A stretch of 64,000 bases of DNA from Amphiscolops sp. MND2022. Its lineage: Eukaryota. A program made the position numbers and the translations under genes. The stretch is from positions 37,014,001-37,078,000 of the forward strand of contig OZ076413.1 in assembly GCA_964187785.1 (NCBI GenBank), given 5' to 3'. Below, piece after piece: positions 12,068-63,059 of this stretch (the stretch's first letter is position 1; every line of letters begins with the position of its first letter). The notes under the pieces were generated by a model. That model saw nothing but the letters and a program-made list of their open reading frames with translations. It was not told the DNA's origin and did no database searches.

Positions 12068-12370
12068 TTACGTGGGTGTCTCTATGTCGCAGTTTGCGAC
12101 TTGCAATTTGAAGGTGGGTGGGTCCATTTCCTTGCGAATGTTGTCTGGGCTAACTGATTTGATTTTTTGGAATTCACTTTCTGGTAGGCAGTTAACGAGT
12201 GCCCCCGAATCAACAAGTACATCTACTGATAAAATGTTGAAGTCCATTGGGGGCGAAAAGCATCTTCCCCTTGTTTTTAGGTTGATGCTGAAAAGATAGG
12301 TATGCATTTTCCGCTTGTGTCTGGGTCTGTGATAGCGATTTCGGTCAGTTGTTTGTTGATGTGGATCCAA
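12068..12370 (-). pseudogene. pol: Gypsy-1 retropepsin-like aspartic protease
   Basis: VDVLVDSGALVNCLPE motif; frameshifted flanks. Confidence 0.9.
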
Positions 12371-14177: not shown

Positions 14178-14640
14178 TCGTGTTAGAAATATCCTCGAAA
14201 TCGTAGTTAATCGAACTGGCTTTCTACATCTAGCTATCTGGTCGACTGGTCATTCCTCAGTTTACGCTTTTGTGATTTCTTAGGCATGACTTGGAACACG
14301 GTTAGTTAATAAAAACTTAATTGAATTAATGGAAGCCAATAGTAGGAAACAATACGTTCGAACAACTAGACAATTAAACAAGTCGATCAACTGTTCATTA
14401 TTATCGAAAAATGCGACTTAGAATAAGTAAGAATTCAAAGGGAAGGTTGGAATACTACTTCGAAACAATTGGTATTTCAAACGTTTACAAAAGTTGGAAA
14501 AATAATTCAGTTCGTTCCTAAGCCCACTTCAGGTTTTTATACTTTACGCTAGACACGCGGGGAAAACCTCGCGCGTGAATTCACACCTCGTTCAACCCGG
14601 TGTGCAATCCGAGTCTAGAAAATCCAAATAAGGTAGGCTT

Positions 14641-16192
14641 CTTGGGACTCGGCATTCGGTTCCATCCAACTTTCACATAAATGTGGGAATCACTTCCTGC
14701 CGCTTCCCATTTCCGCGACCCTTTCTTCTTCATTTTCCGCCTTTTAAAGACCCCGAGTTGAAGTTGGCCTTGAAACTCATGAACCTAGCTACTGAAGCGG
14801 GAAAAGGAACTGAATTTACATTGAAGAATTATCTACTGAACAACAAAATATGAAAATGAAAATTAACAACTCTGACAATCATTTAATCAGGCAATTAACA
14901 CTGTTAATTAGCGTTTAAAGAACACTACGGCACAAATACTCCCTGGCATATGACCAGGGAGTATTTGTGCCGTAGTGTTATTTAAACGCTAATTAACAGT
15001 GTTAATTGCCTGATTAAAAGATTGTCAGAGTTGTTAATTTTCGTTTTCATATTTTGTTGTTCAGTAGATAATTCTTCAATGTAAATTCAGTTCCTTTTCC
15101 CGCTTCAGTAGCTAGGTTTATGAGTTTCAATGCCAACTTCAACTCGGGGTCTTTAAAAGGCGGGAAATGAAGAAGAAAGGGTCGCGGAATTGGGAAGAAT
15201 TAACGTTCTGAGTCGCCTGGCGTAGTGACCAGGTGTTTGACCCAACGATCTGAACAATACAATGCATGGACTGAACAGGAATGCAACTGTAATATTGCAC
15301 ATTATAGTACAACAAACATAACAATGATTATAACTATTGTTAACAAGTGTATCACTTCATGTAATACGGCTAGATTATAAGTGGAAAGGGCAATATTAAA
15401 GGAGGAACTAGTACGTTTAACGCTTAACATTCGGTAGTTACGGGTTAGATAGTATTTGGACAACCTTATATTACACTCTTGTTCGAACGATTTAGTTGTT
15501 ATACCAACTAGTTACTATTTCATATTGTAGGTTTAGGCTGGTCGCCCAGGGGGGTGACCCAATCATAAAATTAATGAATTCACCATATCATTATTGTACC
15601 AACACTAATGTTATTTCCGTTAGGTTTTTTTCCGTTATCATTTACAATGAGCTTCTTTTAAACTCTTGTTTGCTATTAAAATGGTACTTGGTTTCAATCG
15701 GTTACAGCTGCATTTCAACCATTTCGAACGAGCGACTGAGCGTGCGTCCCAGTTCCGCTCAACTGGTAGGCTGCCTGAGCGGTTGACTCAGATTTATTGG
15801 TTAGCACAATTTGAGCTCAGCGCTGATTGGTTGTTGCAAAAGAGTGGTTGGATTTTAGTAGCTGCTTGAGGGGCGACACTCCAGTTGACGCGCTAGCTGA
15901 ATTAAATTCAGTCAACGCGCTGGCTGTTTGACTGTAAACAAATCACTGCACTTATTACTATATAATTATTTACATATTTATGTATTTTGAACACTGCACA
16001 AAAATGGTTATTAGTATTTATTGTACATTCTCGTAATGATTTAATGATATTAATTGTTGTTTGTTGTTTTCTTTTCAGGTTTGGTTTGTTTCTGTGTTTC
16101 TTTCCGGTCATCTAACCAGTCGTTGTCTCCACTTACTTCTCTCGGCGTTTCTATTGTGTTTGTATTTCCACAGCTCTGCTGGGGCTGCGACA
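14641..16192 (-). repeat. Gypsy-1 5' LTR (true inner boundary uncertain), contains inverted duplication
   Basis: Homologous to 3200-4522; ends ...GCTGCGACA on the plus strand. Confidence 0.85.
14703..15197. repeat. Long hairpin: ~244-bp arms, 7-nt loop (14947-14953)
   Basis: 14954-15197 is the reverse complement of 14703-14946; I counted about 7 mismatches. Confidence 0.97.
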
Positions 16193-16795
16193 ACAACAAT
16201 AGTAAATGGGCCACAAACACTGTGCGCAGAAATCAGGCCATGCAACTCATTAATAGGAGCTTAGTTCCAAAGTATCAACAAGCTAAAAGACGCGCATTGC
16301 AATCTTGATTGAGATTCAGCGTTATTAGCACTTCGTATTGAATTTTTTGCAGGTGGTCTTTTTTTCGAACGTTCTTGTTTTTACGGTCTCTGGACGCGCT
16401 CATGTTGCTCAACTTTCTTCTCTTCGGGGACACGTACTTCGAGCAAAGATGATCGCTGCTGTCCACGTCGAATTCGCGGCCAATGTCTCTTCAAGCGATT
16501 CGAATGTTTGAGACATCGAACTTCGATTAGTGATCATGCGGTCAGTGAATGCTGGAAGGTGACGTTACAAATCATCGCAGAGTTTAACTGATGTAGCAGT
16601 TGAAGGTGATGTGACTTGGCCGACACGTCATACTGTTTGGAAATTTGATGCTGATATGGGTCCCAATAGTCTTGTGGCTCGGGAGTTGGAGGTTAAACCA
16701 ACAATGTTCCAATTGGTTTGAAACGTCAGGCAGTCGATGTTACAAATTTTTCATGAAAAATTCGAAATGTGGGGTATCAAATAAGCACATCTAAG

Positions 16796-17022
16796 ATGGC
16801 CGACCCAGAAGGTACGGAAATCGTAGAGGAACCAAAAAAACGTACAAACAGACCACCCATGTAGTCCCCGACACCCGAAGGCACCCGGAAGAAGCTGAAA
16901 AAAGTGCGAAACCCAGTGTGGTGCCATGTGATGCAGGAAAATGTCGGAAGAAACCCCCCAGAATCAAGATGCAACCTGCCAGTGGATCTTTGCAAGAACT
17001 CCGGTACCTTCTTGAAGATGCC
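16796..17022 (+). pseudogene. Possible BED-finger N-terminal fragment of a DNA transposase
   Basis: MADPEG...RNPVWCHV...ATCQW resembles the start of a BED finger; contains an internal stop. Confidence 0.25.
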
Positions 17023-17482
17023 CGAGGAACTCTTAATAGTTAATTTCATTGTTATTAATGTTTTTGGCAGGTTTGTGATGAAATTGGATCTAGCAGATCC
17101 CAAGTTTGCTGATTTTAGATCTAATTCTGCAAATATAATGTACTTTTGCTGAACACTTTTTTTGGACCTCGGAAGTATGTAGGAAGGCGTGGGAGTACGT
17201 TAGGAGCCTAGGAGTCGTTTTTACAGGCTTGTGGGGCGTGTCCGGACTTTGGCTCTGCGTTTTTTAGATAAGCTCTACAAGCACGAAAATTCGGAATTTC
17301 CAAACAAATTTTTCCGAGAATTTTTGAAGGCGTGTGTTTCAAGGATTGTTTTAAGAAATTTGGAACATATGTGGAAGTTTGTTTCTAAATCAAAAAGATC
17401 GAAAAATCTAACCTCAACGTTTTCCGTAGATTCAATTTCAAAGTGACGAAATGGCGGCAAATTCAAAACTATGGGGCGGTCT

Positions 17483-18007
17483 ACAACCCATGGTAACCCA
17501 CCACTGGCCATCGGTGGACCACCGGTGACCACCGGTGAAGGCAATTTCGGATAATCAATCACTAGTTCCACCGGTGGTCACTAGTTTTTCAAACAAAATG
17601 AATCGTGAATTATGGAAAACTATTGAAAATTATCATTTCGTTATGGAATTCGAAAGTTATTTATGTTTTCAAAAAATCCACGTCTGCACTCAAGAAGTTC
17701 TGCAGCAATTAAGACAATTTTGGCACCGCGTGTACGCGAGTCGCGATGTAGGAATTGCAGCAGAACAAATATCGCTGAGGCAAAACAAACAAATTACAAA
17801 AGCTGATAGCGCAGAGGTAAATGCTGGGGTGTCAACAAAATTAACACAGGATCGCGTCACAATTTTTGCAATATTTTGTATACATGAAATTTTTCCCTAC
17901 CGGTGGTCCACCCCCGATCGCCACAAAATATGTCATGGCCACCGCCATGACCACCGGTGGGCTGCGATGGCAAGTGCGGTGGCCACCGGTGGGTTACCCT
18001 GGGTTGT
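17483..18007. mobile_element. MITE-like element with ~30-bp imperfect TIRs and ACCACCGGT(G) subrepeats
   Basis: Left ACAACCCATGGTAACCCACC vs reverse complement of right end ACAACCCAGGGTAACCCACC. No clear TSD. Confidence 0.7.
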
Positions 18008-18894
18008 CAGCGCGGGCAACCTTGTTCCGTCGAGCAATCTGGTGTTGCTGCGGGCCATTAGTTTTGAGGCCTTAGCTAAGTCTTGAATCTTTTAAAAGAT
18101 GGTTAACAGGAGCTAACGCAATCGTTGTAATAAAAGTTAATCAGATTTCCTATTAAATTTCGATACTACGAGAGTTCCAGCGAAAAAAAACTTCTATGCG
18201 AAGGTATTGGTATTGTCAGTCAGTTGAAAACAGTTGTGTTGGAGAAACTTGAAAGTGAGAAAGTTGAGTTAATAAACATTCAGTTCACACTTAATGAACG
18301 CCCTGGCCGATGTTTTACAGGCACCTTCAAAAAATGCCGGCTATTTTTTTATAAAACATGGAAAATTCAGGGACCATGCCTGGAATTTTTTTGTGAACTG
18401 AACATGCAACTTGAAAAATTTTGCAAAATTACCAGGCAACTTAGAAAATGCTGGCAGTATTTCAAGTACTTTTAAAATTATCCTGCAACCTATAAAACAT
18501 TTTTTCAATGCATGTAGTGTCACCCCAAAAGACTCTCAAAGCGATCATTCAATTTGAACTCAATTCTCATTCTGACGAAGTCTACTTTCTTCAATTCTGA
18601 TGTTCTTGTAAAAAACAATAAGAATAAGAAAAGAGCCGCGGGCTTGATATTTCTGACATTCATTGGAAATTGAATTAAGTGATATCAATGGAAAGCAACA
18701 AATATCATTATGCAATTGACTCTTATTACTGCACAAAACCATTAATTTCCAAACTCAGTTACAGCTTTATTGGGAATCAATTTCCATTATAGTATACATG
18801 AAATACGTAATTTGTTCTTTTTTTGTTATTGCGTAAGCCTGATTACTGCGCAATACGCCACGTAGTACCCAGTAATGAGAGTCAACTGAACAAT

Positions 18895-42480: not shown

Positions 42481-43707
42481 GCAGTCACGTGGCTAAAAAT
42501 GCATAAAATAAGCCAATCAAATGCCAGTTCAATACAGCAAGTACGTGTTCGACGTTTTCAGTTTGCACCTTGTTTTGATTCACTGTAATTACACTGTAAT
42601 TGTTAGCTTCAATAAAATCCGTAACTTTTTGAATCCAATTTGGTTCAGAGCCCAATTGAGTTTTTCGTTGCTGAACTTCAATTTATCCAGACCGACGATC
42701 AGTTTTATCCAAGGCACAACCAAAAAGGAAGACAGGTTTGAGTTTTGAGGTTTTTTTGGTGAATTCCCATATAACATAAGAGCATTTGGCAAATAACAAG
42801 TTGAAATTAGTTTCAAATGACATAAAAACGAAGTCATTTCATTTTTATGTCATTTGAAACTAATTCCAATTTTCTAAACTTCTATATAAACAAAAACTTC
42901 TCATAAACAATTTTATTTTTTATGATGAGTTTCACTTAACAAAAATAAAATTGTTTACGAGAAAATTTAAGTGGTCAAAAGAGTTCAAAATACAAAAGAT
43001 TCTGTGAGGCAATTACAGATGAAATTTTCTGATGTCGATTGTTTAACCGTGTTTTTGGTTTTTTGTTATTTGAAACTAATTTCAATTTTATGTTATTTGA
43101 AACTAATTTTGTTTCTGTTATTTGCTCTTATGCTATTTGGTACGTAATCATTTTGTTGTTTTTCATTTTTGGTTTTTGTATATTATGATCATGCCAGTAC
43201 ACAAAATTAGGACCATGTCATTTTTCCCCCAAAAAGCGGCGGGGGTAATAAGACAATACCATTACGTCGACATCGTTTGCGTTGAAAGTTTGATCCAATA
43301 TAATAATTGACAGAATCCTGCAAGGTGTACCTGGTGGAAAATAGATGACATGGTCCCAAAATTACTATAATTGTTGTCATGCCAGTAAACAAATTTATAC
43401 TTGTCTGATCATTCCAGTAAACAAAACTTGAGTGTAATTATTCCATCGATCCTATCATATTTATCCAATTAGGTCATGGATTTTTGCATACATCTTTCGT
43501 GGGCCATTTTTCTCGGGACCATTTATCTTCTCGGAATGTAGGGGGAACATCGTTGGAATTAGAATGTTCAAGAACACAAGTTTCACATAATTTGCTTTCC
43601 AGTCAGATATTGTGGGTTTTTGCTTGAACATGTCAAACTGAAATATAAAATGTTTGGATGGAACGTCATGTCAAAAGGTGACCATGTAAAAAAATTGTAG
43701 GTCTGAG

Positions 43708-44148
43708 CAGGGCTGTTCAAAAATGAATTGTCATAACAATAATTGTCATTTTTTCTACTGGTACCAGAAAATGTGACAATTGGAAAAAATTGCAATAAAA
43801 ATTGTCGCATGTATATAAATGTAACATTTTGTTCCTGCGTCTCTGTGTAATTCATTCGCCGGTTTTTGAAACAGCGCTGAGAAAGTATCAGAACGGAGAG
43901 GAAATTTCAAGTCTGGAAAAGGATATTCTTCAGAAAATCCAGGCTACCACACCATCTTGAAAGTCAAATTTTCTAGGCAGTCAACCGGGACTTTCTGTTT
44001 TTCTTTTAATTTCAAATGTTTTACTTATATTGTTTTATATAAGAAAAAATGAAACAATAATTGCAATTATAATTGTTGGCAATGTTAAAAAATATAAATA
44101 AAATTGTAGACTCAAAAAATGATTGCATTTTAATTGTGAACAACCCTG
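43708..44148. mobile_element. hAT-type MITE (441 bp) inserted in the 34-bp array; partial copy at ~41443-41590
   Basis: TIRs CAGGGCTGTTCA / TGAACAACCCTG (11/12 match). 8-bp TSD GGTCTGAG at 43700-43707 and 44149-44156. Confidence 0.9.
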
Positions 44149-44680
44149 GGTCTGAGTGACCATGTCAAAAAAGAAATTTGTATGTCTGAGTGACCATGTC
44201 AAAAAAATTGTAGGTCTGAGTGACCATGTCAAAAAAAATGTATCTCTGAGTGACCATGTCAAAGATATTTCTAGGTCTGAGTGGCCTTGTCAAAAAAGAA
44301 ATTTGTAGGTCTGAATGACCTTGTCAAAAACGAAATTTGTAGGTCTGAGTGACCATGTCAAAAAAGAAATTTGTAGGTCTGAGTGACCATGTCAAAAAAG
44401 AAACTTGTAGGTCTGAGTGACCGTGTCAAAAAAGAAATTCGTAGGTCTGAGTGACCTTGTCAAAAAGATATTTGTAGGTCTTTGTGACCATGTCAAAAAA
44501 AATTGTAGGTCTGAGTGACCATGTCAAAAAAGAAGTTTGTAGGTCTTAGTGACCATGTCAAAAAAGATATATGTAGGTCTGAGTGACCATGTCAAAAAAG
44601 AAATATGTAGGTCGGAGTGACCATGTCCAAAAAATTGTAGGTCTGAGTGACCATGTCACAATCAAAAGGGGATCTGAGTG
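44149..44680 (+). repeat. Tandem array, ~30-34-bp unit GACCATGTCAAAAAAGAAATTTGTAGGTCTGAGT, ~16 copies
   Basis: Directly visible head-to-tail units without spacers. Confidence 0.95.
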
Positions 44681-44703: not shown

Positions 44704-47700
44704 TTATTCGACGCTATTGAATTTCCTTTTCAATGCTTTCTGGGCGGTTTTATACTTCCTGATTGCGGTATGGTATGTTATCGATCCAGCCCTGAGAGGT
44801 TGTGATTGTCTTTGTAATTGCGGCGCGATGTTCTGAAAACGTATTTTTCTCAATTTAGCCCTTGCTGTGGCATCCAGTTCAGAAGTGTATTCTTTGGGAT
44901 CCATCAACATGTTTCTCTTCACACATTCAGTAATGAATTCTGCTTTCAAGTAAATCCAATTGCCCAGGGTGGTATGATACACCGCTTTGGTAACAAGTGT
45001 CTCCTTCGTGCCGGGCGTGTTTTTTACCAAAGTATCTATGCACTTGCTATTCGGGAGAACACAGTAATGGTGGCTCAGGAAACTTAACTTGCTTCAATTA
45101 ATGGTGTCTGTATTGCTCAGAACGTTGCCAGCAGTTTCCAAAATCTTCCTCTCCAAGCTTCCTTGAGTTTCTTTCAAATGCCCATATGTTCCGAGAACAA
45201 CAAAGTTCATGCATCTGAAAATATCGCTCGTCCTTCCGATGTCAAGAGAGGGCACATCAATCGACTCTTGGCAAATCTGTAGATACATCTTGGCTAATTG
45301 GTCGGGGCACTGTTGAAGCAACTTCGACTTTGACGACGACAAATCAATGGCTCGAAAGAGAAAATTGTATGTCAAGATAATTTGACGACATATTCCAAGC
45401 ATCGTTCTCGTCGTCACGCATCGTTCTCGAATTGTAATCTTTGCTGGCTGTATGGTGACTCTTTTCTGTGCCTTCGGTCATGTAATTAAATGGGGCTAAA
45501 ATCTCTCCCTCTTCGAATATCCTCAGCAGCATGTCGATCTTCAGCTTGTACGGAGTCAAGGCACGATCCCCAAATAAACATATGGTACTTTGATAATATG
45601 TCTCGTAAAGGTCTTTACAACTTTGGAGATCAGCCAACTCCCGTTGTCGCGATAGCTCCAGCAATTGGTACAGCGATTGAAATTGCAGATCGGCCAATTT
45701 CCGTTGTCAAATACCAATGCCTCTCGGAAACGATGTTTCTAAACCGTCCACCAAAGAGATCAGTACATTATATGGTGTATTTTCATTCGCCTGATCAGCC
45801 CGGTAAACATGTGCCTCTTCGAATGAATATACACCTTCGAATATAGGAATATCCATTCGTCGATATTCGCTCGTCCGTGTACAGTCCGAGATGATGACTT
45901 CAGCGTCTCGAAAGCTCAGAGAAACAGCCTTACAAAGCTTATCAACTATTTCAAACCTGAAACGAGGCGGCTTTACATTTCTTTGTGTAATATTACATTC
46001 TAATTTCGATATCGCAAGCATGTTAGATAGGATCAGTGAATCGACGTGTAGCTTCAGATCACTTTCGACAGATCGAGCAATCATGTGAAGAACATCAGTG
46101 CACGTGTTGAATGTGGACTTCAAAAACATAAGCGATTCTTTTGGAATTTGTTCGTTGATATCAATAGTCAGCACAGTTCGTCTCCCAGTGAAATGATCAA
46201 CCGTGGAAGGAAGAACCGCACCCTTCCCTTCCTTCTCCTTCTTGTGTGCTTCACTGTTTTTTTCACTTGCTGCTTTGGGACAATTTGCGACAAAATGGGA
46301 GGATCAGGAACATACAGGCACATTTTCGAAAGGCATGAAACGTCACTACTGACTCCTTTCTGTAATCTCAGCTGGAAAGGCGAATCACCCGAACAACTCA
46401 AAATGGCTCCTTCTTCATGCAATGCTTTGGTTTCATTGTATAACTACCCAATGTGTCCTAATACGTTCGCCATTATCAGGTTATACTCTAAATTGACTCG
46501 TACATCTTTCCCCTGTGAAAACATACACCACATGGAAGATCATGCCAGTAGGCAAAATTAAAGAAACATAAAACTTTTGGAAGATCAAGCCAGTAAGTAA
46601 AATGAAAACAAAACGTAAACCACATGGAAGATGACGTCAGTTAGCAAAATTGTAAGAAATATATTCACATTGAAGATCAAATCAGAAAGCAAAATTGGAA
46701 AACATATAAGCCAAAAACTTACGTCGAAAACTGCGAAAGTGAAAACATGCGTCGAAGATTGTTCAGTTTCGATTCCAGTATCTAAGAAACGGAAGGCCAT
46801 TCTCACGACATCTCGTTTGCCTCGTGACATTGCATCACCATAAGTGTCGATTCGCAATCCTGAGATTTCTTTCCATAGACATGAAGGGCAAAAAATTCAC
46901 AAAGTTCACAAGGTTTACACGGAAGCCGGTATGCGTTCTCGATGGTTCAAGCATAGTTCCGAATAAATCATTCATCTGTCTATTGATGATTGAAAGTTCG
47001 AGTCGTGATGGCAATATCGTCGCTTTCACGAATGGGGACTTGAGTAACTGGCGTATCTTCACGAGAAGGTCCTGAGGATTGTTCAACATAAGGAGGCATT
47101 GGATATCGATTTGTGTTTCGTCTCTATCTTTACTGAAAAGATTTGGAAGTAGCATTCCGAGGAGTCGACAGACAATGGTATTCTTTCGTTTTGAAACATC
47201 TTTTTGTTTGTAGAGATAGTCTCTCAAACTCAGAGCGAACTGATTCAGGGATTCGGCTGACTCTGTCAAAAGTTTAAATAAATTAGACAAGAACTGTGAC
47301 TTCGCCGACTTCTCATAAGCAAGCCTGAACTGGCGATACTCGATTGATATGGCATCGTTTGTCAGAGCATTTGATGTGTTTGGAACCGTGTCACCTCAAG
47401 TTGATTGAATTGATAAGTTTGTCGATAAGTCGGCTGGGGCATCGGGTGCGTTCAGGATCGATACATCAACAGTCTTCAATTCTTGTGCGTCGATGCAAGC
47501 AAGGGGCAAAGTTGGATAGAAATGTCTCAAAAATTGTAGTCTTTCGGGAGACCAAGGAAGTGCACGGTGGGGCATATATCATCATGAGATCAAATATATC
47601 TTCTCGCAGTGCAGCAGATCGTTCGGACTTGATCCCTTTAGGCTTATAGACATCGTTGATCTGGACTTTTGACCCGTTGAAATGGTTCTCGATGTATGTT

Positions 47701-47843
47701 TTGATCTTTCGTGGGCCATTTTTCTCGAGACCATTTTTCTTCTCGGGATGTCGGGGGAACATCGTTGGAAAGAGAACGTTCAGGAAGACAAGCTTCACAT
47801 AATTTGCTTTCCCGTCAGAGATGGTGGGTTTTTGCTTGAACAT
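44704..47843 (-). pseudogene. Tpase-1: RAG1-core/Transib-related DDE transposase with C-terminal BRCT; one 210-nt intron
   Basis: IDTYGDA..VVRMAFRFL; FD|GKD; CSGDSPFQLRL; DVLHMIARSVESDLK; LTPYKLK; TEGTEKSHH. BRCT: IFRCMNFVVLG...LERKILETAGNVL...YLKAEFITECVKRNMLMDPKEY. Stops and frameshifts present. Confidence 0.75.
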
Positions 47844-47869
47844 GTCAAACTAAAATTTAAAACATTGGG

Positions 47870-48330
47870 ATGAAACGTCATGTCAAAAAAGTGACAATGT
47901 CAAAAAAGAGATTTGCAGTGCTGAGTATAGGATATTTCAAAAAATATATATTTGTAGGTTGCAGCGACCATGTCAAAAACAAATTTGTAGGTCTGAGTGA
48001 CTATGTCAAAGCAGGACTTTGTACTACCTAGTACTACATAGGTCTGAGTGACCCTGTCAAAAAAGAGTAGGTCTGAGTGACAATGTCAAAAAAGAAATTT
48101 GTAGTGCTGAGTGACCATTTCAAAAAAAATATATTTGTAGGTTGGAGTGACCACGGCAAAAACAAAATTTGTAGGTCTGCGTGACCATGTCAAAAAAGAC
48201 TTTGTACTACCTAGTAGGTCTGAGCGACCCTGTCAAAAAAGTGTAGGTCTGAGTGATTTACATGATGAGTGACCAAATGATTTCAAAAAAAAGTTTGTCA
48301 CAAGACCTAGTAGGTCTGAGATTTAATAAA
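47870..48330 (+). repeat. Second, more degenerate 34-bp-unit array, immediately 5' of Tpase-1
   Basis: Same GTAGGTCTGAGTGACCATGTCAAAAA motif, about 11 copies. Confidence 0.9.
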
Positions 48331-48524: not shown

Positions 48525-51500
48525 TTACACAGTAACAGCAGTAGGTCTCGAACAAAATTCGCCTTTGCATTTTGGGTCTTTGTAATTGAAGCATATTTCT
48601 TCCAACGCGTCTATGTCTCTCTTTGCGATGGAAAAAAAGAGCGTTCTTTCCGTTTATCACCATGCGCTTCTTTCGTACATTGCATTGTGGGCGATTATCT
48701 GGTCTATAATTTAAAAGTCTTCCGAATGTTCTTCGTCCAGGGTGGCATTCACAAGTGTCTGAAGTTGCATCAAATACTATGTCGCCACAGTGTAGAATAT
48801 ATTGCGTGTGTTCACGTTGGTACATTACGGACTGTGTGATGATCACATCTGTGTGATAGTCACAGACAACTTTGCGTTTGTTGATTGGGGTCGTTGCTAC
48901 TACGCCTCGTCCAGAAGCACCATTGTCGAAAACGATCTTCTCGCATATCTGAAGGAACGGCTAATGCTGACTTGCCACGAATTCAGTCACTTTCTGCATG
49001 TTGGCGATAGCAGATGTGAAACTGCAGAAGAACATGTTGTGTCCTCTACTGTGTGAATGAGGAGTCGTGTCCTCAGTCGGAGTGTGGCGCGTCGATCTTC
49101 TGTTTTCGGAAACAGGGGCTGGTTTCCATAGAGCGAGTGTGCTATCTACAATCCTCGCATGATCGGCCCAACCACGGCTTCGCACATTGTTCACAACAGT
49201 GGTTTTGGAAGGAGCTGTAGATCCAGCCAAAACTTGCAACATCTTTTGGACACGTAATTGTACAATTTCGTAACGCAAATGATCGTTGATTTTTTCCCCC
49301 AGCTCTTGCGCTACAGCCTTGTCCATAGACGTGTTTTCCATGATCGTTTTGCGACAGTGAGCAGGCGTCGGGACCTTTTCATCGACGTTCGTTGGGTGTC
49401 GGAAGTACTTTTTCACCTAGAAAATCTTAGATGTGAAAATCATTGGTCAATCATAATTTGATGATCTGATCATGCCAGTAAACAAAATTAAATCAAAAAT
49501 TTTTCACTAACAAATCAAAAACGTTTGATAAGTTTGTATTGTCTCATGTTTCGAAAACAAGATAATATTGAGTTGCATATAGAAACAGTGAGTTGTGAAA
49601 ATCATTGGTTAATCATACATTGATGATCTGATCATGCCAGTAAACAAAATTATTTCAAAAACATTTTTACTAACAAGTCAACGTTTGATAACGCTTGATA
49701 ATTTTCTATTGTCTCTTGTTGTGAAAACACAAAAATTTACCCCATTAAAACTTCCAACAAAATCGGAATCCGAATAGAAAACTCGTTTCTTGGAAGTCGG
49801 CGACATGGTCATCATCTCGTTCTGTGAAATGCGCGCCTTCTTCAAGTTGACGGTCGGGTCATCAATTGTGCTTGGGCGAGGGTTCTCGTCATCGTCGTTT
49901 ATCCTTTCCTCATCAGGGCCAGCAACAATTGCTTTCCGTTTCTTTTTGTGAGTTGCATTCATCTTGCTTTGAAGTTTTCGCAGACTCTTGAAACATTCAA
50001 TTGTTTACTGCCCTGTGAGTTGTAGAAGAAGGACTGGGTTCTTTCTTTGAAATCTGCGGCAATTGTTGCAACGTCAAAACTTTCATTCAGGACTCTCAGT
50101 GCAACAATCTAAACTGGTCTGATACGTTTGAAAAAAAAATGTCAAAACACTTTTCTCGAATTTGGTAAACCTGAGGGCAGTTCTATATTTGTACTTGCTC
50201 CCGTCTTCAACGGCAACCACGAAGCTGCCACTGCCATTTTCGTTGAAATTCACAAAAGCATAGACAGTGAATTGCTTCAGAAGGCGCGAGGGGTAGCTAT
50301 TGATGTAGCACCACATTATCATTAGGCATTGGAAGACCGGCAGAGAATCCTCTTTTGGGGGCGTCTTGTCGCAGTCAACCAGATGCTGAATGTGGGCGCG
50401 ACCTTCAGCCCACTTTTTCATCGCCTGGGATCACTCATCACTTGGCGGCATTGCTGGTGGTAATTTGGAAGGGGTACCTCGGTTGACCCTCTTACTAGCA
50501 TCTTGGCTGTCTTGGCAAGATCTTGCCAAATTCTTACTACATCTTGGCAACCATGGATACCATGGCAAGATTCTTATTAAGATCTTACCAAGATAATATT
50601 AAAATTACTAAGACAAAACATATTCCAAAATCGTATCTTATCACGATGAACAAAATTTTAAGATTATAAAAAAAACACTATACGTTCGGTACAAGCAGCC
50701 GAGACTCAATCTAAGGGCTCATTTCACCCAACAACGACTATTTCTACTCGTTTTCATAATCAAAATGCTTAAACCTGCTGAAAAAATTTTGCATGCAAAA
50801 ATGCGTGAAAAATTACGATAACTGCTCACCTGTTTAGGACTGAGAAATGCGAATGTACCAAATAGATGGTCATTTCAAGGGCTTTCCAAAACTTGTAATT
50901 TATCACTCCTGTCGGTTCCAGATACGGAGAAATATTCTCTCAAACGTCCAGACCCACTATCGGAAAGTTACCCGGAAGTTTCGGAAAGGAAAGACCATAA
51001 ATCCGGAAATTTTTGTGATAATCATATTTCCAGCTTTCTTTGAGCCTGATTCAGCAGCCTTATCACTGCTAGAAACGACGTTCATTGCACTAATTTGGGT
51101 AATGATTCAGCTCAAGGCTTTTTGACGCCGTTGTTGGCGACAGTTTTGCAATTGAAAGAACAATTTAACCAGCGTCTTCCTAAATATATATCTCTCAACC
51201 AAATTTTATACATTGCTAACAGAAATTTTAATGTCTAACAACTGCAGAAATGTTGGTTTTTGCTGACTTCCTTTCAGATTTTTTTCTTTCCAAATAGGAT
51301 TTTACAATAAAAGTTTTCTTGGGAAAATGGCTCTCTTGATAAGATTTTACCATGACATCTTGCAATTCTTGCCAATATCTTGTCAAGATCTTAGCTAAGA
51401 TTTTTCCAAGATCTTGGCAAGATCTTGCCAAGATCTTACTAAGATATCCATGGAGGGTCGACCCGGGTAGGCATCTGACAGCAAGCTGCACCCGGAAATA

Positions 51501-52575: not shown

Positions 52576-54375
52576 GATTGAAGATACAAATGAAAACTAT
52601 GAACGTAAAGGAAAGAAACGTTAAAGAAAATTTGTAATAGTAAAAGACAACAAAACTGGTTGAAGTGAAAAGTTACAGTAGAGTGACAACTGTAAAACTT
52701 ACTAAAACTAAATGGTATTTTGTTAACTTCAAATTATTTGAAAATTTTTGAAAGCTTAAAACTTTGAAAGCAAAATTAAGATGAACAGAAGTGATGTTTG
52801 AAATTTGTTAACTAATCTATTTAAATTTGAAGTGAAATTGAGATGTGGTATTATTTGACAATTGAGAATTCGAGGAAGTTGTAGAGTCAAGTTTAGAAGC
52901 GAGCAATACGAAACAAGAAAGGTGAAGAACTTAGGAACTGATCTCAGAAAATTTTGTTACACACCCAGAAAAAGAGGCAATTAAGCGATTACCTCATGTC
53001 AAGAGGTGATAAACTTTTTTCACTACCAATAATATTGACACCTATAATAATTAACTAACGGATAACCTCTAATAAACTCATGCCTTAAAGGATTACCCTC
53101 AAAGATAGGTGTTAGTAAATTAAATCAACTCAAACCAGTCATATACCAAAATCACACCTATGCATTGGATTTTTGCCTATTTACTCACATATTTGCCGGC
53201 CAGACTTACTTCATTACGGGGCCAAAGTGGGAAATGTTCAATTTTTCAAGAATCACGAAAAGTGGTAGTTTAAAGCAGCGAAGTGAATTTTTTCTCAATT
53301 CTTGAAATTTGAACTTCAAAGGAATTGTTTATGCCGCCTATAAAAGTCAAAAATTGAGAAAACAATAGTGCGCATGTATTTCCACTAATTTCAAGAATCG
53401 AGAAAAAGACATTCGACAATCTAGACACTAATTTTAATACATGGAGATAATGTGTTTACATTAGTTTGTCGATTCTCGAAATTTTGTCGATTCTTGAAAA
53501 TTTTGTCGATTCTTGGAAAAGTTATTGATTCTTGGAAATTGTCTGGATTCTTATACAATTTTCCCGAATTCTCATTCAAATGTTACAATAGTGAATTTAA
53601 TTGATCAGTTGGTAATTATTTTTTCATCAAATCAACGGAAGAATCATTGTTAAAATTATAATAAAGGTGTACAATTATTCCTCAGGTTAAATTGTTCTGA
53701 ACCAGCTAGATTCTAAGGTGCTAAACTAGTTTTTAATTGAGACTTTTACTAGATTTTTTGAATGAATAATTCAATTTATTGCAGCAAAGATTTTTTCTGA
53801 ACCAATAGCACCTCCATTTTAGCTTTTTACTTCGTTACTTGCCAAAAGTTACTTGTCAAAAGTTTCTAAACCGTGAGTAACAATTGAATTGACATCGAGT
53901 CTTTCAGAGAATTACTAAATAATTCTAATCCATGAGCAACAAAGGAAAAATTCCAATTGAAATCGAGTCTTTCAATAAATGATTAGAAACCAGTTGTCTG
54001 AAACCAGCAGGAGCATCAAAAGCAAAAGGAAATTGAATTCGAACCACACTTTGAACTTTCAATTTTGGCCACATCAATTTTGGCCACATGGAACAGGTTC
54101 CGGAAAACGAATTAGACCATCCTAATTGTTATCATCTCTTCGAGTCACTCTTGAGTTTTCAAAAACTTTTAAACCAGGAGTACAAAAGAAATAGTTGAAC
54201 TAATTCAAATTTGAACACGAAAATAAATTTCATTGAAGTTTACCAGAGTACAGAATCATGTTCACAATTACATCAAATATTCAGATTGTGCCTCTTTCAA
54301 ATTGTGTCGAATTTTTTCTCGGTAGCTTGAAGCTGGATACACCCCTTCAATTGTCACCAAACCACATTTAATGAA

Positions 54376-55720
54376 TTACATGCTGAATATTTTCCGGATA
54401 TAAAATCTCATTGACTTGATGTATTTATCACTTTCTTCGTATGAACCTGGTCTTCTGTCCCAAGATTTGCCGAGAACTGAGTCCCAAGATTCATTGCATT
54501 CAACTTCAGTGCAGGGATTTTGAATTGAAAACATGACATCTTTCTCATTTTCGAATCCAAGGCTTCTTTTTGCAAAATCGTCAGCGATGCAAATAATCCC
54601 GGAGTAGCCAAACTTGGACCCTTCACAGCTGATTAAATTCCACACACTTTATCGATGGGGTGAGTTAGTTCCTGTATCGAATTCTCGTGGGTAAATTTCA
54701 ATAAATAGTTGCGTTCTTTGAGTTATACCATAGTCGAAGGCATGGTCACAGTAACATCGTCACACTCTTCGGACACCATTGTCACGAAAACAATATGCTT
54801 GTCTTTTTTGTAAATTGACTTCATTTCGATCACTGTTGCCGCCTCACCAGAGTGATCAAGGACCTTGGCACCAATTTGAAGTGTCCCATTTATGCAGGGA
54901 AGTATTTCACCGGTACTCGTTGGACCGATTTCTGAAAAGTAAAAAAATGACTCATGAGACTCATCACATTTGACACATCCCGTGACTCATAACTCATCAC
55001 TCAAAAAATGATTTCTGAGAAAAACTGACTTTTTCTGAATCAAATTCAAAAAATGAAAAAAAAATGTTTTTAAATGAAGTGCTTCTATGGTTGAATACTT
55101 ACAGGGACCAATGTCGACATCTCGACAGGCTCAGCTGGCTTCTTTGCTCCAAAGGTTACTTTTTGGGCTTTGGAGCAGTTAATTTTTCTTCTTTTTCGTC
55201 ATTTGAACAATAATTTTCGTCTGCGATATCATCATGATTTGTCGACGAGGACGGTTTGTGACCGACTCGGGTGGCACATAGATCATTGTATGGAATTTTT
55301 AAAGTGGGATAGTTTGTGTTAAGGGCTTTGATTTCTTCGTGGTCTTCATGCCAATTTTCATAATCTTCCTCCAACAGAATTTCCATTACACATTTCACTG
55401 GGCCATCCTTCAAAAAACATACTTGATCGCAACGCGAAAGGAATTTTGGATTGTAATCAAGTTGTTCTTTTTTTTGTTCGACGGCGTTTTTCGGGAAAAA
55501 CATCTCTTATCGCCGCATATTTTCGAATGTTCCACTTTTCAGGTTGCCCCCTTATGTTTTCTTCTACGTGAATTTCTGATGCGGTCTTTTTGCCGAAATC
55601 TTTCCACTGCACAATCACCGTCCAGTCATCTTTGATAGATATTATCTTTGCCTTCCACCAAATAAAAAGTTCATCAACTGCATCGACAATGTCGTTAACT
55701 TGAAATTTTGTTGATAGCAT
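54376..55720 (-). pseudogene. Tudor/Royal-family (PHF20- or Agenet-like) domain gene, spliced and frameshifted
   Basis: KFQVNDIVDAVDELFIWWKAKIISIKDDWTVIVQWKDFG at the N-terminus. Donor GTAAGT ~55100 and acceptor TTTTCAG ~54933. Second barrel-like segment LQIGAKVLDHSGEAATVIE. Confidence 0.65.
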
Positions 55721-56719
55721 ATTTTTTTGGGATTTTTGGTATGAACGTAAGATGGAGTTAATTCGGGAATGAAATTTGAGATACGACAAAAAAAATGCTA
55801 ATCTAATATTTCGAAAATAAGCCTGTGAACTTCCGAGTGTGAAACTCATTTCTTTGCGTTTCGAAGACTCATTTTAGTGACAGTGTGACGCGTCACATTT
55901 GCCTTAAAAAGAGTCACTCTTTTTGGACACATTTGAACAAATCGTTGGCGGTCAAAGATTTGTTCAAATTGATGGGAGTTTTTTCAAACCAAAACGACTC
56001 TTTTCCAACGGGTGTAAATATCATGATAACATAATATGATAATATACTTGTTAAAGATCACAATTTTTTTATAAACCGTTATATCCTTATCTTATCATTG
56101 CTTTCAAACAATCAACTCATTGCTTATTATTCTCAAATGGATCTTTGGAAACAACATTCAATGATCATCGATGGCCGACATTTTATTGATTACGAATTTA
56201 TCGAGTATTTACGTGATCACACAGATGGAAAGAAATGCCGACAAGCAGAAGTCCTTGTAAAGCATGTCATCAGCGGAACCTCGTTGAACTGCGAGGATCT
56301 CATTGTGACATGGACCAAAAAAGGAATGAAACGTCACTCGGTCTTCATGGCAATAAGTTACTTCTGGTTGTGACACTTTTTCATCGTAAAAGTAGCCTCA
56401 TTTTGAGAAAAAACGCGTTTTTATATCAAAAACCTGCTTTTAAAGTAGTAATGATGAGGAATAAATCATCACTCGTGTTTTGGCAATTTTGTCGTCTTCT
56501 TCTAATGAAAAAAATTATTTTTATATCGATATAAGACTAAAACCTATATCATACAAATTTGTATCGATTTTTTCTAAACCGGGAGCAAAAAATTGCTCCA
56601 GAATCAGAAAAAAACCGAACATATACATTTCTGCATTTAAATTCAAACAAATGCTCACAGTTTAGAATTGATTATTGTTTTTTCATTTCAGGCTCAAATA
56701 ATGCAGCTGATTGTTCTGA

Positions 56720-59637
56720 GTGGCGACAAAAGTCTACCCGGTCACAAAAAAGAAATGCATTCATCAATGCCTTTTTGGGTTGGATTTGTACCCTGCAAAC
56801 CTTTTCCAGGATGTTGTTGCTTCAGCGACGAGTTGTTGTATCGCTTCTATGACAACTCAGGAGACACAAACAGACGAGAACGCAACGATTGAAACAACTT
56901 CCATTCAAAGAGACGCAGTCCCTGTGACTGAATCCCCTAAGTCCATATTTATCGACGAAGTCCCAGCGACTGAACACCCTGCCATTCGAATGGACGAAGT
57001 CTTCGTGACTGAACTCCCTAACATTATATGTATTGACGACGTCCCCATGACTGAATCTCAAATTCAGAACAATGGTGAAGCAACGATGGATTAGGAAAAC
57101 GTGTCGTCTCGAAATCGCAATACTAAGGCTCGAAAACTGGAACTGAAAAGAGTAGCAAGGTTGCGGAAATGTCCGTATAATTATTGGAAATACGTTTTGA
57201 ATCACGCCAAAACGAACAATGTTGACTTCGAGATACTAATAGAAGTGATCCTGAAAGTTTCAAAAACGAAACAATCATCGTATCTTAAAACAATTGTTAA
57301 AAAACGTTTCTCAAATAAGAAGTCCAAAGAGGCGATGATTTCAAGTCTTGCTATTTCGATTCGATCAGGAAATATTTATGATGTAATTTCAACGATCCGG
57401 GCAAATTTAGCCATCAACGGACAGCTGCACAACATTATTCCATCCTCAAGAGCGATCCGAAGATTTTCAAAGATCTTAACGAATGCGTTCATTTCGATGT
57501 GCAAACCAGAAGCCACGTTCTCAGGGTTTCGATTTGATCTCGTCAAGTGTGTCAAAATCGCAGCGTGGCTCCTTTTCGAAACTGAAGACCTTTCTGAATT
57601 GACTATCGATTTATGGGGAGATGGATGTGAGATTGGTGGTGTCGATCATACAAGAATGTGCTTCCGGATACTGAAGAATTATTCCTCGAAAGTTACCGTT
57701 CAATCAGCTACTGTGGCATTATGTTTCAGCGCATTTCATGGTAAAGATAGTAGATTTACCCTTGAACAAAATCTCGGACCTTCAGTTCTTGGCAACCAAG
57801 AAACAGGATGGCTGTACAAACAAACCAAAGAACTCTCATCTCAAGGTGCCATCGTGACTTGTTCTGGAGACAATCCTTATTTATATCGTTTGATTGAGGG
57901 TATTGATAGCGATGCCTCATCAAAATATCCACCTGATCTTGCACTTTATGTCGGTGAGGCGAAATTTTTACTAACTGATGTCGACCCTGCAACAGGATTC
58001 CGCTACAACGTTGATGTGCCCTTCAGGAGAGAAATACCCCCTCAATCACTCGTACATCTCGATGACATACGATGTGTTGTACCGGATGTCACCCACATGA
58101 TCACCCGTTGTGTCGAAAGTGATCTCAAGAAAGTTGCCCAAAAAATTGTTCGAGAAAAATATCCTTATCACAAGAAAACTATTGAAACTCTCGAAGAAAT
58201 CTGCACTCGAAGAGAAATAAAGAAACCCAGATTCAAATTCGACGTGTAGATCAGAGGAACAAGTGATTTGAAAAAACCAACAGTTGGACCCGTCTCTTTG
58301 TCTGGAACGTCTGCTATTGTTGCCATTGCCGAAAAAGATGAATTTGAAGGTGTAGAAGGCTTACCAAATATTTTCGACAATTTATGGAACAATGAGACTA
58401 TCTTTGACCCCAAGAACGACAACATGGAAAACGATGATGCCCGTGCAGCCCGCAATGCGTTTTACGCCCTCGAGAAACTGCACTCCGACAAAATTCCAAA
58501 TTCAGACAGTTATAAAACCAAAGATTGTGCCCAATTGCTACAAACAAGCTTGAATAAATGCGCAATACTTTTGAGATGTTCAAAAAATGGTCTTGACATT
58601 GAACAATTTGAATTTTGGTCTGAGACATAATATCAATGCTCAATTCTTTTCTTTTCCGGATAAGACGGTTTGACACCATATAAGTTGAAGATGATAATGA
58701 TACCCCAGATTTTGAAGCATATGTATCATATGTTTGAAGCAATGGAGAAATCAAATCACCACGCACATAAAGACTTCCAAACGAGAGATGGAGGTAAAAT
58801 TCATAACCCAGATCCGTTATTTTACGAGGGTTTTTTCTCATACTGCCGTTCTTTGAATGTGGTGTCAAAAACCCGAAATAAACCAGTGAATTTGCTAATC
58901 GATAAATTGACCACCACTTTCGCAACCGAAAAAAGCGAGACCTATACGGAAATTTGTCATAAAATTGTGCCCCTTCCATGATTGATATTGGTGCTCAGCG
59001 AAAGAAACAGGAATTGCTCTTTGGTTTCCAATTCCACGTGGTTGGCTTTTTCCCTGGAGTCAAAGACAATCAAAAGGGAGTTGAAAACTTGATAATTGAA
59101 TTGGGTGGAGAAGTATTGACAAAAGAAAAAGCCCTGGGCTTGACCAAACGTCATAGTAAAACTCCGAATTGCTTCTTTGTACTCTATAACGATGTCGAGT
59201 TGAAGAGGGCCACCACTGGAAACGGAGACCACAACTCTGCATCTGGTTCGGAAAGTGACAACCCCGTGAAATCTACCAAATCATCATCCAGGCGAACAAT
59301 CAAGCCACGTATCACGGCGAAGGGCCCAGCTCAAACCTGTCTACTATTTGCGGCAACGGATTTTCAATTCCCGAACGTTGCCTACATCTTCGATACAAAC
59401 AACTCTGATCGTTTTCTTGACCCTTCAAAGTATCTTATGTCAAGTGCCACTGAAATTGAACGAATCTGTGTGAATGATCAACGACCACTTTTTGCGAAAC
59501 AGAGAAATCCTAACAATACCGAAAACGTTACCACATCATTGGTTTATGCATTGAAGGTCTCGAGAAAGCGGGCCCGCGAAGAAGAACAAGAAATTGACCA
59601 CGTAAATGATAGTATGAAGAAAGAAAAACACACATGA
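56720..59637 (+). pseudogene. Tpase-2: RAG1-core/Transib-related DDE transposase with C-terminal BRCT (extra 5' exon(s) likely near 56100-56370)
   Basis: One frame from 56720 to 58981 with in-frame stops ending at 57094, 58249, 58630 and 58663, then a frameshift in a C4 run. Candidate catalytic D at 57620 (WGDG), D at 57869 (SGDNP), E at 58745 (AMEKSN). BRCT: LLFGFQFHVVG...VENLIIELGGEVL...VAYIFDTNNSDRFLDPSKY. Confidence 0.8.
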
Positions 59638-59908
59638 ACATTTTTTAAATGACAGTGCTTTTGACATGGATCATCTAATCCTATCATTTGTATGACTTTT
59701 CGAAAATTTATTCTTGGTCATTGAATGATCATCTATGATGTTTTCAAAATCTTTCTCCTGATCACTGAATGATCGTCTATGATGTTTTCGTAGAAAAAAC
59801 CATATCTCTTGTAGAAATATCAAAAAATCAAATGCTTGAAAAATGAATAAACCAAATCAATAATTCAAATATCAAATCATTAGTTATTCAAAAAAGTTTT
59901 TACTAAAC

Positions 59909-62170
59909 TTATTTATTCTGAAACATCTTTCTTGCTTCTTGATCCCCATACTCATATCTTAGCTCTTCGAAGGGAGGAATGTCATGTTTTGCCACCATTA
60001 ACAACACAACTTTGCTGGAGGATAGATTCAAAATAACAGGTTTGACGTTGGTGTGCTTAGAAGATTTGTGGTTTATCAACCGGGCCATGCATATATTTTT
60101 CATATGATCGACTACTGGACAAATTTCGTTTGAAGCATCGATTAGATGTTTCAGTGAAATCTGAAAAAGAAATTCACTGCCTTCTGGGTGATCAGCCATG
60201 TAATCGTTGGCAGTGATGCCCTTTACGACTTTTCCATGGTAATCAGCAAGGATTTGATCCTTGTCTATGAAATCGGTGGCAATGACTCCTCGGCCGAATC
60301 CTTTGAAGTTGACGTCACATATGAATGGCCACGTCTGATCTTTGCAAGTTTTCGTCAGGATCTTTTTGAATTGTTCATGCTGATCTTTTGAGGGGAGCAT
60401 CAAAGCCTGTGATCGTAACGAGACAGTCGGCGTCTGGAGTGCCTCGGGTTTCAACTGAAATTGAACGATTTTCCAGGTCTGAAAAGAGTTGGTGTTTATA
60501 ATCAAATTTATACTTGCGATTTTGTGAAATTTCTTTTCAAAAAATATTTTTTTATATCTTCAACAAATTCTTCTTCAATAAAAGTCAATGCTCTTGAATC
60601 TCTCAATTCAATGCTCTTAAGAGAAAGTCTCTACTGAAGTTTTTTTAAAGTGACATATTTTGATTGGAAAATAGACAGCAGAAAAACTGAAATACCTTTT
60701 TCAGGTCTTCATTCTCGTCCCACCCTCTTGTTTTGTACAGACTTTTGAGTTTCTCATGGGTCGGGTCCTGGGCGTGACGTTTTCCAAAATCACAATACTC
60801 GAGGAAAGCCTTTGCCCTTGCGACTTGTCTCACATATCTTTGGGCATTTTGCCGGGAAACGACAGCTGACGCAAGTTCTCGCTCAGTGATTTCATTTTGG
60901 GCCGCCCACTCTTTGTCAACGTTCAAGGCCCGTATTTCAGACATTTCTCGTTTCTTTTTCAAAAATGTTGCATCGGGCGTTGCTGTTTTTGGCATATAGG
61001 ATTTGACGTATTTTCCCACTCTGTTCTCGATGGTGTCGCGGCTTCTTTTTTCCATCTGCAGAAAAATCATTTGAAAATATTTCTAAACCATGAGCACATC
61101 TTTTCAATATGCAAAAAAATAATTTTAAAATACCTCTAAACCACAAGCACATCTTTTCAATGTTCAAAAACGAATCATTTGAAAATATTTCTAAACCACG
61201 AGCACATTTTTTCAGCAATTGTTCAAAATATTTTTTAAAAATACCTTATCCAACACTTCCTCCGCAATGACTCGAGGATTGAAAGAGGTCTTTCCCATTG
61301 ACGAAAAGAAAATTTTGGTTTTCATAACTTCTTCAATTTCTTCGTCTTCGCTTCTGAATCAATAATTTGAGTGGTTAACAAAACAAGTTTACTTGATCTA
61401 GTTTTTTCTCCAAAATATTGAAAAAGACAACAAACAAATGGAAAAAAAAACAAAAAATGAAAGTCTTGGATGAGAAAATACTTTACCGAAAAAAGGTTCC
61501 ACCTCGATTTCACCAGCACCATTTCCGCTCTGCTTGGCGTTGATGATGAGTTGCATCATCGAATGCACAATAACAGATTGTACCGTCTTTGTCATCATGG
61601 GAACCGGCTCAGTGTACATGAAAAGGTATGTTATAATACCGTGAAATAAATTGATCCTTTGATGGTAACTAAGGCCATCGTTTACTGTATATTCGTCCAA
61701 AATTTCGCGGACATAACTCTCTAATTCGGGTCGTACCTTTGCCGACCAGAGTCCTTTTGCAGCATTTCGTTTTGATTCAGTTTAGTCTCGGGGTTTCGGA
61801 AGTAGAGGTCGTTTTAACGGATTTACTTTTTCGGTGGTTGGGATGTCGTCAAAAATACCGGAATTGGTTGATGGTAAAATTTCAAAAACAATGTTTTCTT
61901 GAGTGTAATTGCACGTGCGGTTTCCATAATTTGTTGCCTGAATGGGACTCTCACTTGGAGTGAAACTGAAATTACTCACAAAAGGAGTCTTGTTAGAACC
62001 CATTTGGTAGTTGGGAGTAGACTGATATAATGCATTCGAATTGTGCGAATGATTAGTATATTGTGGAAGCGGAGGAGGTAACAAAGGTGTGAGGGAAGTT
62101 AGCTGAGTCTGTGGTAACGAGCCAAGAAAGTTAGTGCTCGAGTTAAGATCAATTTGTCTGACTCGACATT
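59909..62170 (-). pseudogene. SET-2: multi-exon SET-domain (SET8/KMT5A-like) gene, convergent with Tpase-2
   Basis: GFGRGVIAT, ADYHG, ARLINH, HDIPPFEELRYEYGD; no Cys-rich post-SET. Phase-0 intron 60479-60695 joins KK|TWK; acceptor at 61056. Last two exons are open; disablements lie in the 5' part. Confidence 0.9.
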
Positions 62171-62366: not shown

Positions 62367-63059
62367 AATAAATTGATGCTGATAAAATGCCCATTAATCT
62401 TCCGCAGTAATTGACATAATTACTTCATCGCACATTTTAAAATGAAATTTAAAAAAGACTACTTTACCTTAATTTGTTGAAACTCTAAAAATAATCGGCG
62501 CAAAATTATTAAACATGCTTGAAGAATTCAGAAATGGATAATTAACCATCAACCTCATGTTTAAAGATAGAAGTTTGGATATTTAATCGATTTCTTCTTG
62601 GTCCCAGAACGCCACAAGAATTCACGTAAGCATAATTAAACATGGTTTCAAGAAACCTCACACGCATGATTAACCATGGCAAATTTTCCTTTCAGGCAGT
62701 AGCACGTGGAGTTTAATCAATTTGCTGCGCAATTTTTGTGGTTTCTCCGAACTAATGAATAAACATTCGTATTCGAAAACTTTTCCATGTTTAATGCTCC
62801 TGATTTAGAAACTTTATATTCTGAATAATTTTTACATGATTCAAAATCAGGTTATAACTTCCTGAACATTTTAGCTACTCTTGCACTCATGGTTTAGAAA
62901 CTTTCTCTGCTGAAGATTTCTCATAGAACTTTGTATTCTATTAGCAAAATAAAAAACTTTGTTGAATTCTAACTTCAGCGACCCACATCGCTCATGGTTT
63001 GGAAACTTTTACTTGATTATTTTGAGAACTCGATTTTTGAGCGACTCATATGTTCATGG

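Follow-up and report, generated by a model that had tools for sequence, protein, structure and literature searches.

RAG1 assembles the antibody and T-cell-receptor genes and descends from Transib-type transposases. To our knowledge, few deep relatives of RAG1 have been described, and all of them share the same zinc-binding module. Here we analyse a stretch of 64,000 nucleotides (hereafter the window) from the genome assembly of Amphiscolops sp. MND2022 (GCA_964187785.1, contig OZ076413.1, positions 37,014,001 to 37,078,000, forward strand), which contains two decayed transposase copies, Tpase-2 (window 56098–59637, plus strand) and Tpase-1 (minus strand). Tpase-2 most probably derives from the transposase of an unannotated, multi-gene family of animal DNA transposons, a family built like the RAG1/Transib core and, in a wider sense, like the CMCT clade described below.

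The relationship between Transib and RAG1 was established from significant sequence similarity and ten shared motifs, including SxxCxxC, together with 5-bp duplications and termini resembling recombination signal sequences (Kapitonov & Jurka 2005, PMC1131882). In the same study, the spacer between the second catalytic aspartate (D2) and the catalytic glutamate (E) was found to be 253 amino acids (aa) long in RAG1 and 206–214 aa long in Transib. More recently, the CMC transposases, Transib and RAG1 were united as the CMCT clade, comprising EnSpm/CACTA, Mirage, Chapaev and Transib together with Plavaka, ESTA and Lanisha (Kojima 2025, PMC12730594). Members of this clade share C(2)C and H(3-4)H residues between D2 and E, have termini that are mostly of the CA..TG type and generate target duplications of 2–5 bp; some lineages also carry a gene for an epigenetic enzyme, TET/JBP (PMC12730594).

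Residues 200–1000 of one full-length member of the family (P0018) were modelled with AlphaFold2 using a 60-sequence alignment. The resulting model has a predicted local distance difference test score (pLDDT) of 88.8 and a predicted template modelling score (pTM) of 0.87. When it was compared with the PDB using Foldseek, ranks 1–46 were all occupied by RAG1, HzTransib or BbRAGL (E from 3.7e-6), with matches spanning 550–730 alignment columns; the P element followed at rank 47. Structural alignment scores were 19.1 for RAG1 (382–401 aligned residues, root-mean-square deviation 3.6–3.9 Å; model 91–598 to RAG1 479–1006), 17.4 for HzTransib (381; model 92–593 to 41–478), 17.0 for BbRAGL (398; model 91–598 to 563–1108) and 12.3 for the P element (287), while a separate C-terminal region of the model (636–796) aligned to BRCT domains with scores of 10–11 (92–101 residues). 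Among the Swiss-Prot AlphaFold models the top eight matches were all RAG1; ZBED/hAT-derived proteins were at least 10-fold worse and these, as well as P/THAP9, ranked lower, their TM-scores being at most half as high. The longest intact open reading frame (ORF) of Tpase-2 in the window, encoding 382 aa, was modelled with 42 sequences (pLDDT 82.5), and its top 36 Foldseek matches were again to RAG1/Transib. VIA-align scored this shorter model at 11.3 against RAG1 (model 90–377 to RAG1 479–853), 8.7 against BbRAGL and 7.9 against HzTransib, the values for the P element, Hermes and integrases being 4.2, 3.4 and about 3.4, respectively. Finally, language-model features of P0018 (290–800) matched RAG1 clusters at 0.94–0.95 with 172–179 shared features, scores that, according to the tool, usually denote the same family. 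A different fold as the best match, the outcome that a first-pass annotation of this DNA had set against its own comparison with RAG1, was looked for, and RAG1, HzTransib and BbRAGL came first. An initial search of Atlas features with the window ORF gave weak leads (scores ≤0.78) towards P-element and DUF6589 proteins, which were set aside after the structure searches.

As judged from the placement of secondary structure elements in the P0018 model, the proposed DDE residues occur in the order expected of a site on an RNase H-like β1-β2-β3-α-β4-α core, namely on β1, after β4 and on a later helix. Strand β1 (169–179) contains D171 and D175 (VDIGGDG), with D175 in mid-strand; D255 (SGD) stands directly after β4 (249–254); a short strand (323–325) is followed by D326-x-x-H329; and E545 and E548 open a helix (545–561) located past the insertion. 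Residues D171, D175, D214, D255, D326, H329, R333, E336, Y520, K523 and H552 are conserved in 100% of the 60-sequence alignment, and the two glutamates of the ExxE motif, E545 and E548, in 97% each (43/44); Y520 and K523 stem from TPYKxK and H552 from the EKSNH motif. Across the family, the triad is embedded in collinear conserved motifs with a long D2–E spacer of 283–352 aa, and the motifs exceed chance expectation. The corresponding landmarks of RAG1 we take, in part from PDB titles, to be D600, D708, H795, the Y935 region and E962. The ranges of the structural alignment, rather than a residue-level correspondence, support pairing the D of GDG with D600, the D of SGD with D708, DxxH with H795, TPYxxK with the Y935 region and, of the two glutamates in ExxE-KSNH, the second with E962. 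It follows the motif pairs put forward in the first-pass annotation, with which the aligned ranges of model and RAG1 are indeed collinear; given a RAG1/Transib-core architecture, the motifs would mark RAG1-equivalent positions.

Translation of the window showed that nucleotides 56720–58981 (plus strand) constitute one protein frame that is cut by in-frame stops and then by a frameshift. All eight motif strings previously listed for Tpase-2 were located in a single reading frame and in the stated order (57437–58756). The frame contains four in-frame stops (TAG at 57092 and 58247, TAA at 58628 and 58661) and a shift near 58979. Tpase-2 is a pseudogene, since each of these breaks is read through in homologues taken from public assemblies. 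P0001, which is 94% identical to Tpase-2, has E at the sites of both TAG codons, and at the two TAA codons the homologues have Y and K/E; P0005, P0008 and P0012 read WSE(T/S/A)YYQ...F(S)G(K/E)(D/E)GLTPYKLK through both. In the same three proteins 6 and 3 additional residues flank the E motif, which Tpase-2 has lost through two small deletions, and in relatives the BRCT-like tail is in frame with the transposase. The N-terminal piece of Tpase-2 is separated from the next piece by ∼300 bp containing an inverted pair of TTTCTAAACC motifs. In another locus, L002, the transposase ORF is split at 5700–5916 by ∼200 bp of low-complexity, intron-like sequence situated just before the first catalytic D; Tpase-2 is uninterrupted at this site.

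The unit carrying Tpase-2 is roughly 9.8 kb long and is present in many copies. Five of them begin with a common sequence, CATTACG(A/G)(C/G)GCCAA (at 53212 in the window, 6460 in L004, 1304 in L001, 5529 in L005 and 5301 in L006), and the DNA upstream of it is unrelated. An exact shared left end with unrelated flanks indicates a defined end of an element that was inserted at different places. The right limit in the window is approximate; in the two 17.4-kb copies it lies at position 7872 of L007 (copy L005/L007) and 6539 of L008 (copy L006/L008). The genes in the window are arranged in the order Tudor-like (−), transposase-BRCT (+), SET (−) and a fourth gene (−), and this order is also found in L001, with 42–66% protein identity over local matches, and in L004, with about 92% identity at the DNA level. 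The SET gene adjoins the transposase gene in L001, L003, L004, L006/L008 and the contig of P0046, being upstream and divergent in the very distant members (L003 and the P0046 contig). Many diverged copies were found on separate contigs of one sample, and there are dozens of copies per genome.

Several further features of these copies were recorded. The L004 copy (6460–18212) is 92% identical to window 53212–61357; in it, the segment equivalent to window 55264–58644, which covers the Tudor-like gene and most of the transposase, is duplicated in tandem. The L006/L008 contig holds the SET-side half of the element in a further, partial copy (L008 1–6541 versus 9705–16156), which directly adjoins the first copy at its right limit, apparently in a nested or tandem arrangement. 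The 15-mer TTTCTAAACCRTGAG (≤2 mismatches) occurs nine times in the window against 0.45 expected by chance, at 53863, 53922, 56571, 56654(−), 61080, 61188, 62797(−), 62886(−) and 62991(−); all nine sites are within the Tpase-2 unit, clustered at gene borders, and may be shared promoter/trailer modules or putative transposase binding sites. A 69-bp palindrome (L007 7802–7870), the arms of which, TCACTGTGTCC and GGACACAGTGA, contain the heptamer CACAGTG, lies immediately beyond the right-hand limit of copy L005/L007; L008 has no such palindrome at the corresponding position, and it is therefore probably unrelated.

Features of the Tpase-2 unit and of Tpase-1 in the window
Feature	Position	Strand	Basis or remark
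Left terminus of the unit, CATTACGGGGCCAA	53212–53225	+	likeness of five copies starts here
Tpase-2, N-terminal ORF piece	56098–56373	+	matches N-terminus of homologue P0007 and that of the L002 ORF
Tpase-2, low-complexity linker	56720–57091	+	translation; ends at stop TAG 57092
Tpase-2, longest intact piece (382 aa)	57101–58246	+	helical DNA-binding, pre-RNase H, RNase H fold with D1, D2 and DxxH
IPSSRAIRRFSK motif	57437–57472	+	Tpase-2 frame translation
GFRFD motif	57524–57538	+	Tpase-2 frame translation
DLWGDG motif (D1, GDG)	57608–57625	+	Tpase-2 frame translation
TRMCFRIL motif	57650–57673	+	Tpase-2 frame translation
SGDNPYLYRLIEG motif (D2, SGD)	57863–57901	+	Tpase-2 frame translation
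PDVTH motif (DxxH)	58082–58096	+	Tpase-2 frame translation
In-frame stop TAG	58247–58249	+	translation; E in homologue P0001
Helical insertion-domain piece between D2 and E	58250–58627	+	aligns to P0001, P0008 and P0012
Two in-frame TAA stops (58628, 58661)	58628–58663	+	within conserved WSETYYQ...FSGKDG block
C-terminal catalytic piece with TPYKLK and ExxE-KSNH	58670–58978	+	homologue alignment
LTPYKLK motif (TPYKLK)	58670–58690	+	Tpase-2 frame translation
FEAMEKSN motif (ExxE-KSNH)	58733–58756	+	Tpase-2 frame translation
BRCT-type tail	58978–59637	+	accessible only via frameshift near 58979
SET-domain gene	59909–60505	−	Pfam SET, E 5.4e-10
Right limit of the unit (approximate)	63018–63049	+	likeness to L004 fades
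Tpase-1	about 47290–44704	−	tblastn, ORF pieces, motif coordinates; BRCT-like tail
Tpase-1 DTYGDA	46831–46848	−	motif search
Tpase-1 SGDSPF	46363–46392	−	motif search
Tpase-1 TDVLH	46085–46099	−	motif search
Tpase-1 LTPYKLK	45539–45559	−	motif search
Tpase-1 TEGTEKSHH	45452–45478	−	motif search

Sequence databases were searched with a profile of the family. Among 1.84 billion representatives, 481 clusters at 50% identity were retrieved at E ≤1e-3, 150 of them below 1e-30. All family clusters come from ENA, Logan or JGI assemblies and are labelled at most as 'hypothetical protein'; intact members are 978–1301 aa long, with full-length ORFs represented by P0018, P0021, P0046, P0054 and P0056. 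A word-indexed profile search of 5.8 billion proteins matched unnamed family members alone and returned no distant relative with a Pfam label. Pfam analysis of 60 diverse members detected BRCT_2 in 19 and BRCT in 7 of them, and both a BRCT fold and a BRCT profile match are present at the C-terminus of the family. The pieces of the window copy were searched separately, with the breaks left unrepaired; the Tpase-2 transposase pieces had no match in Pfam, nor did phmmer find any match to the window pieces among PDB sequences.

A number of observations weigh against the assignment to the RAG1/Transib core. Sequence-based methods failed to connect RAG1 or Transib with the family: at E ≤1, none of the 60 members matched a RAG1 or transposase model in Pfam, a database that includes RAG1, and family profiles (whole length, deep alignment and E-motif region alone) had no match to RAG1, HzTransib, BbRAGL or any other PDB sequence at E ≤10. 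The ligands of the ZnC2 and ZnH2 modules of RAG1 and Transib, C(2)C and H(3-4)H, are absent from the family. At the level of the element, no convincing inverted repeats were found in window 43–63 kb, in L003 or between the two ends of the unit, the left-end sequence, searched for on both strands of all loci, does not recur inverted at the right limits, and comparison of the copies, in which the right end is just roughly placed, showed neither matching flanking bases nor a target duplication. In the Foldseek searches of PDB and Swiss-Prot the global TM-scores are just 0.3–0.5, at least 30 unnamed AlphaFold DB clusters outscore RAG1 (E 1e-13 to 4e-6), and the scarcity of solved structures among relatives may partly account for the first rank of RAG1. 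In addition, CACTA-type Transposase_21 (+DUF4218) clusters align to the family over 413–437 residues (TM 0.43–0.46) in the ESM Atlas shape search.

The last result bears directly on the view that the family is a divergent CMC-side member (CACTA/EnSpm, Mirage or Chapaev-like), not specially near Transib/RAG1, and that RAG1 ranks first only since no CMC transposase structure has been solved. This would sit easily with the CMCT grouping of CMC, Transib and RAG1 (Kojima 2025, PMC12730594), and the cnidarian cluster nearest by features, at best a possible relative, is matched no less well by Transposase_21 clusters (TM 0.65–0.68) than by RAG1 clusters (0.56–0.65). However, the nearest named clusters by language-model features are RAG1/RAG1_RNase_H and not Transposase_21, Pfam Transposase_21 is unmatched at E ≤1 in the 60 members scanned, and the cysteine and histidine pairs missing from the family are carried by CMC transposases too. 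We consider a CMC-side position less likely than not. The family might alternatively consist of duplicated host genes, a domesticated transposase with its chromatin partners, rather than a mobile element; the lack of inverted repeats and target duplications in the loci compared, the gene order kept between the window and L001 at 42–66% protein identity over local matches, and the local tandem duplications among the copies would all agree with this. Against it stand the exact left boundary in five copies adjoining unrelated DNA, the copy number of dozens per genome, the 481 diverged clusters, the stops and frameshifts that fill most copies and differ in each, and the variable position and orientation of the SET gene between lineages, which together make a host-gene origin highly improbable. 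Similarly improbable is a merely generic likeness, in which an ordinary DDE transposase built on the RNase H fold and bearing a helical insertion (of P, hAT or MULE type) pairs with RAG1 by coincidence. DxxH/CxxH and a long insertion are reportedly found in hAT, P, MULE and Kolobok transposases as well (Yuan & Wessler 2011), the top AlphaFold DB cluster match is labelled with a MULE domain, the first Atlas feature search leaned weakly (≤0.78) towards P-element families and RAG1 is invisible to sequence profiles; the P element and hAT-derived proteins nevertheless rank behind RAG1 in the structure searches.

We therefore retain a RAG1/Transib-core architecture for the family. The first-pass annotation had left its placement among RAG1L, Transib and Chapaev-like families undecided, and that position holds, since predicted-structure libraries contain Transposase_21 clusters whose match is roughly as extensive as that of RAG1. 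The most cautious assignment is to a distinct lineage somewhere within the RAG1/Transib/CMC fold class. It is also conceivable, at a little below even chances in our estimation, that the family represents an undescribed, superfamily-level lineage of the RAG1/Transib fold, in which the zinc module and classical inverted repeats were lost or never present, a BRCT domain became fused to the transposase and a chromatin toolkit of its own, SET and Tudor-like, was added.

An intact enzyme of the family is 1000–1300 aa long, with a C-terminal helical domain bearing the E, followed by the BRCT domain. By analogy with RAG1, Transib and hAT, the three carboxylates (D, D and E) would hold two metal ions, the enzyme would nick the ends of the element, and a hairpin formed on flanking DNA may serve to release the latter. 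Break repair and chromatin might be handled by the BRCT tail together with the element's SET and Tudor-like genes, or by factors that these recruit. With a RAG1 architecture lacking the zinc module and possessing a built-in BRCT domain, the family would widen the known range of this fold and serve as an outgroup for rooting RAG/Transib/CMC evolution; should it prove to be a separate superfamily-level lineage, it would be a deep outgroup for the origin of the RAG1 architecture itself. Moreover, it would be a naturally occurring example of a transposase in physical union with a break-repair module and accompanied by a gene for a histone methyltransferase. An active enzyme is impossible from either copy in the window; these dead copies are of value for what they reveal of the family rather than as functioning genes.

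Tpase-1 is an older paralogous pseudogene, more decayed than Tpase-2, with which its pieces share 27–44% identity (tblastn against the window). Although its motifs are split across two frames, the D, D, H and E previously said to mirror those of Tpase-2 are all kept, as is TPYKLK. Direct repeats in the same orientation flank Tpase-1 on both sides (window 43472–44680 and 47684–48256), each consisting of a 205-nt segment (86% identical) and then arrays of a 34-bp unit, TAGGTCTGAGTGACCATGTCAAAAAAGAAATTTG. Short arrays of TGATCATGCCAGTAAACAAAATT are present in and around Tpase-1 (46518–46696, 43186–43445 and 49448–49668); the one inside the coding remnant lies between the D1 and D2 pieces and is therefore probably a small inserted repeat. 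A weak SET-like remnant (48703–48912, minus strand; 29% identity over 78 aa, E 3e-4) is located upstream of Tpase-1 on the same strand, whereas the SET gene of the Tpase-2 unit is convergent.

Compared with the described systems, the family falls outside canonical Transib. The significant sequence similarity by which Transib and RAG1 are defined was not detected, and the D2–E spacer of the family is longer than those of RAG1 and Transib (PMC1131882). The SxxCxxC motif is likewise missing: no Cys pair is conserved between D255 and DxxH, where the block reads PSxLxxYVG, and the only C or H residues conserved at ≥90% in the D2–E interval are H329 (of DxxH) and H542. The left end, CATTACG, differs from the CACAATG-type heptamer of Transib/RAG1 ends, and no 5-bp duplication was found with the right end roughly placed. 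Unlike RAG1, BbRAGL and HzTransib, the transposase has a fused C-terminal BRCT domain, and in place of a RAG2-like partner, none of which was seen, there is a SET-domain gene. The literature searched contains no description of a transposase with BRCT and SET, nor of a Transib with BRCT, and neither the BRCT fusion nor the SET partner is reported there for the CMCT clade, the C(2)C and H(3-4)H signature of which is not conserved in the family. A SET-domain gene of its own is carried by HarbingerS, a cut-and-paste transposon, the transposase of which belongs to the unrelated PIF/Harbinger class, as far as can be told from the account cited in PMC12730594 (Kojima & Jurka 2014). With the CMCT clade the family nevertheless has in common a fold class that includes RAG1 and Transposase_21/EnSpm-type proteins, a left terminus that begins with CA, as do most CMCT termini (the right end being placed only approximately), and, like those lineages that carry TET/JBP, an epigenetic gene travelling with the transposase, in this case SET.

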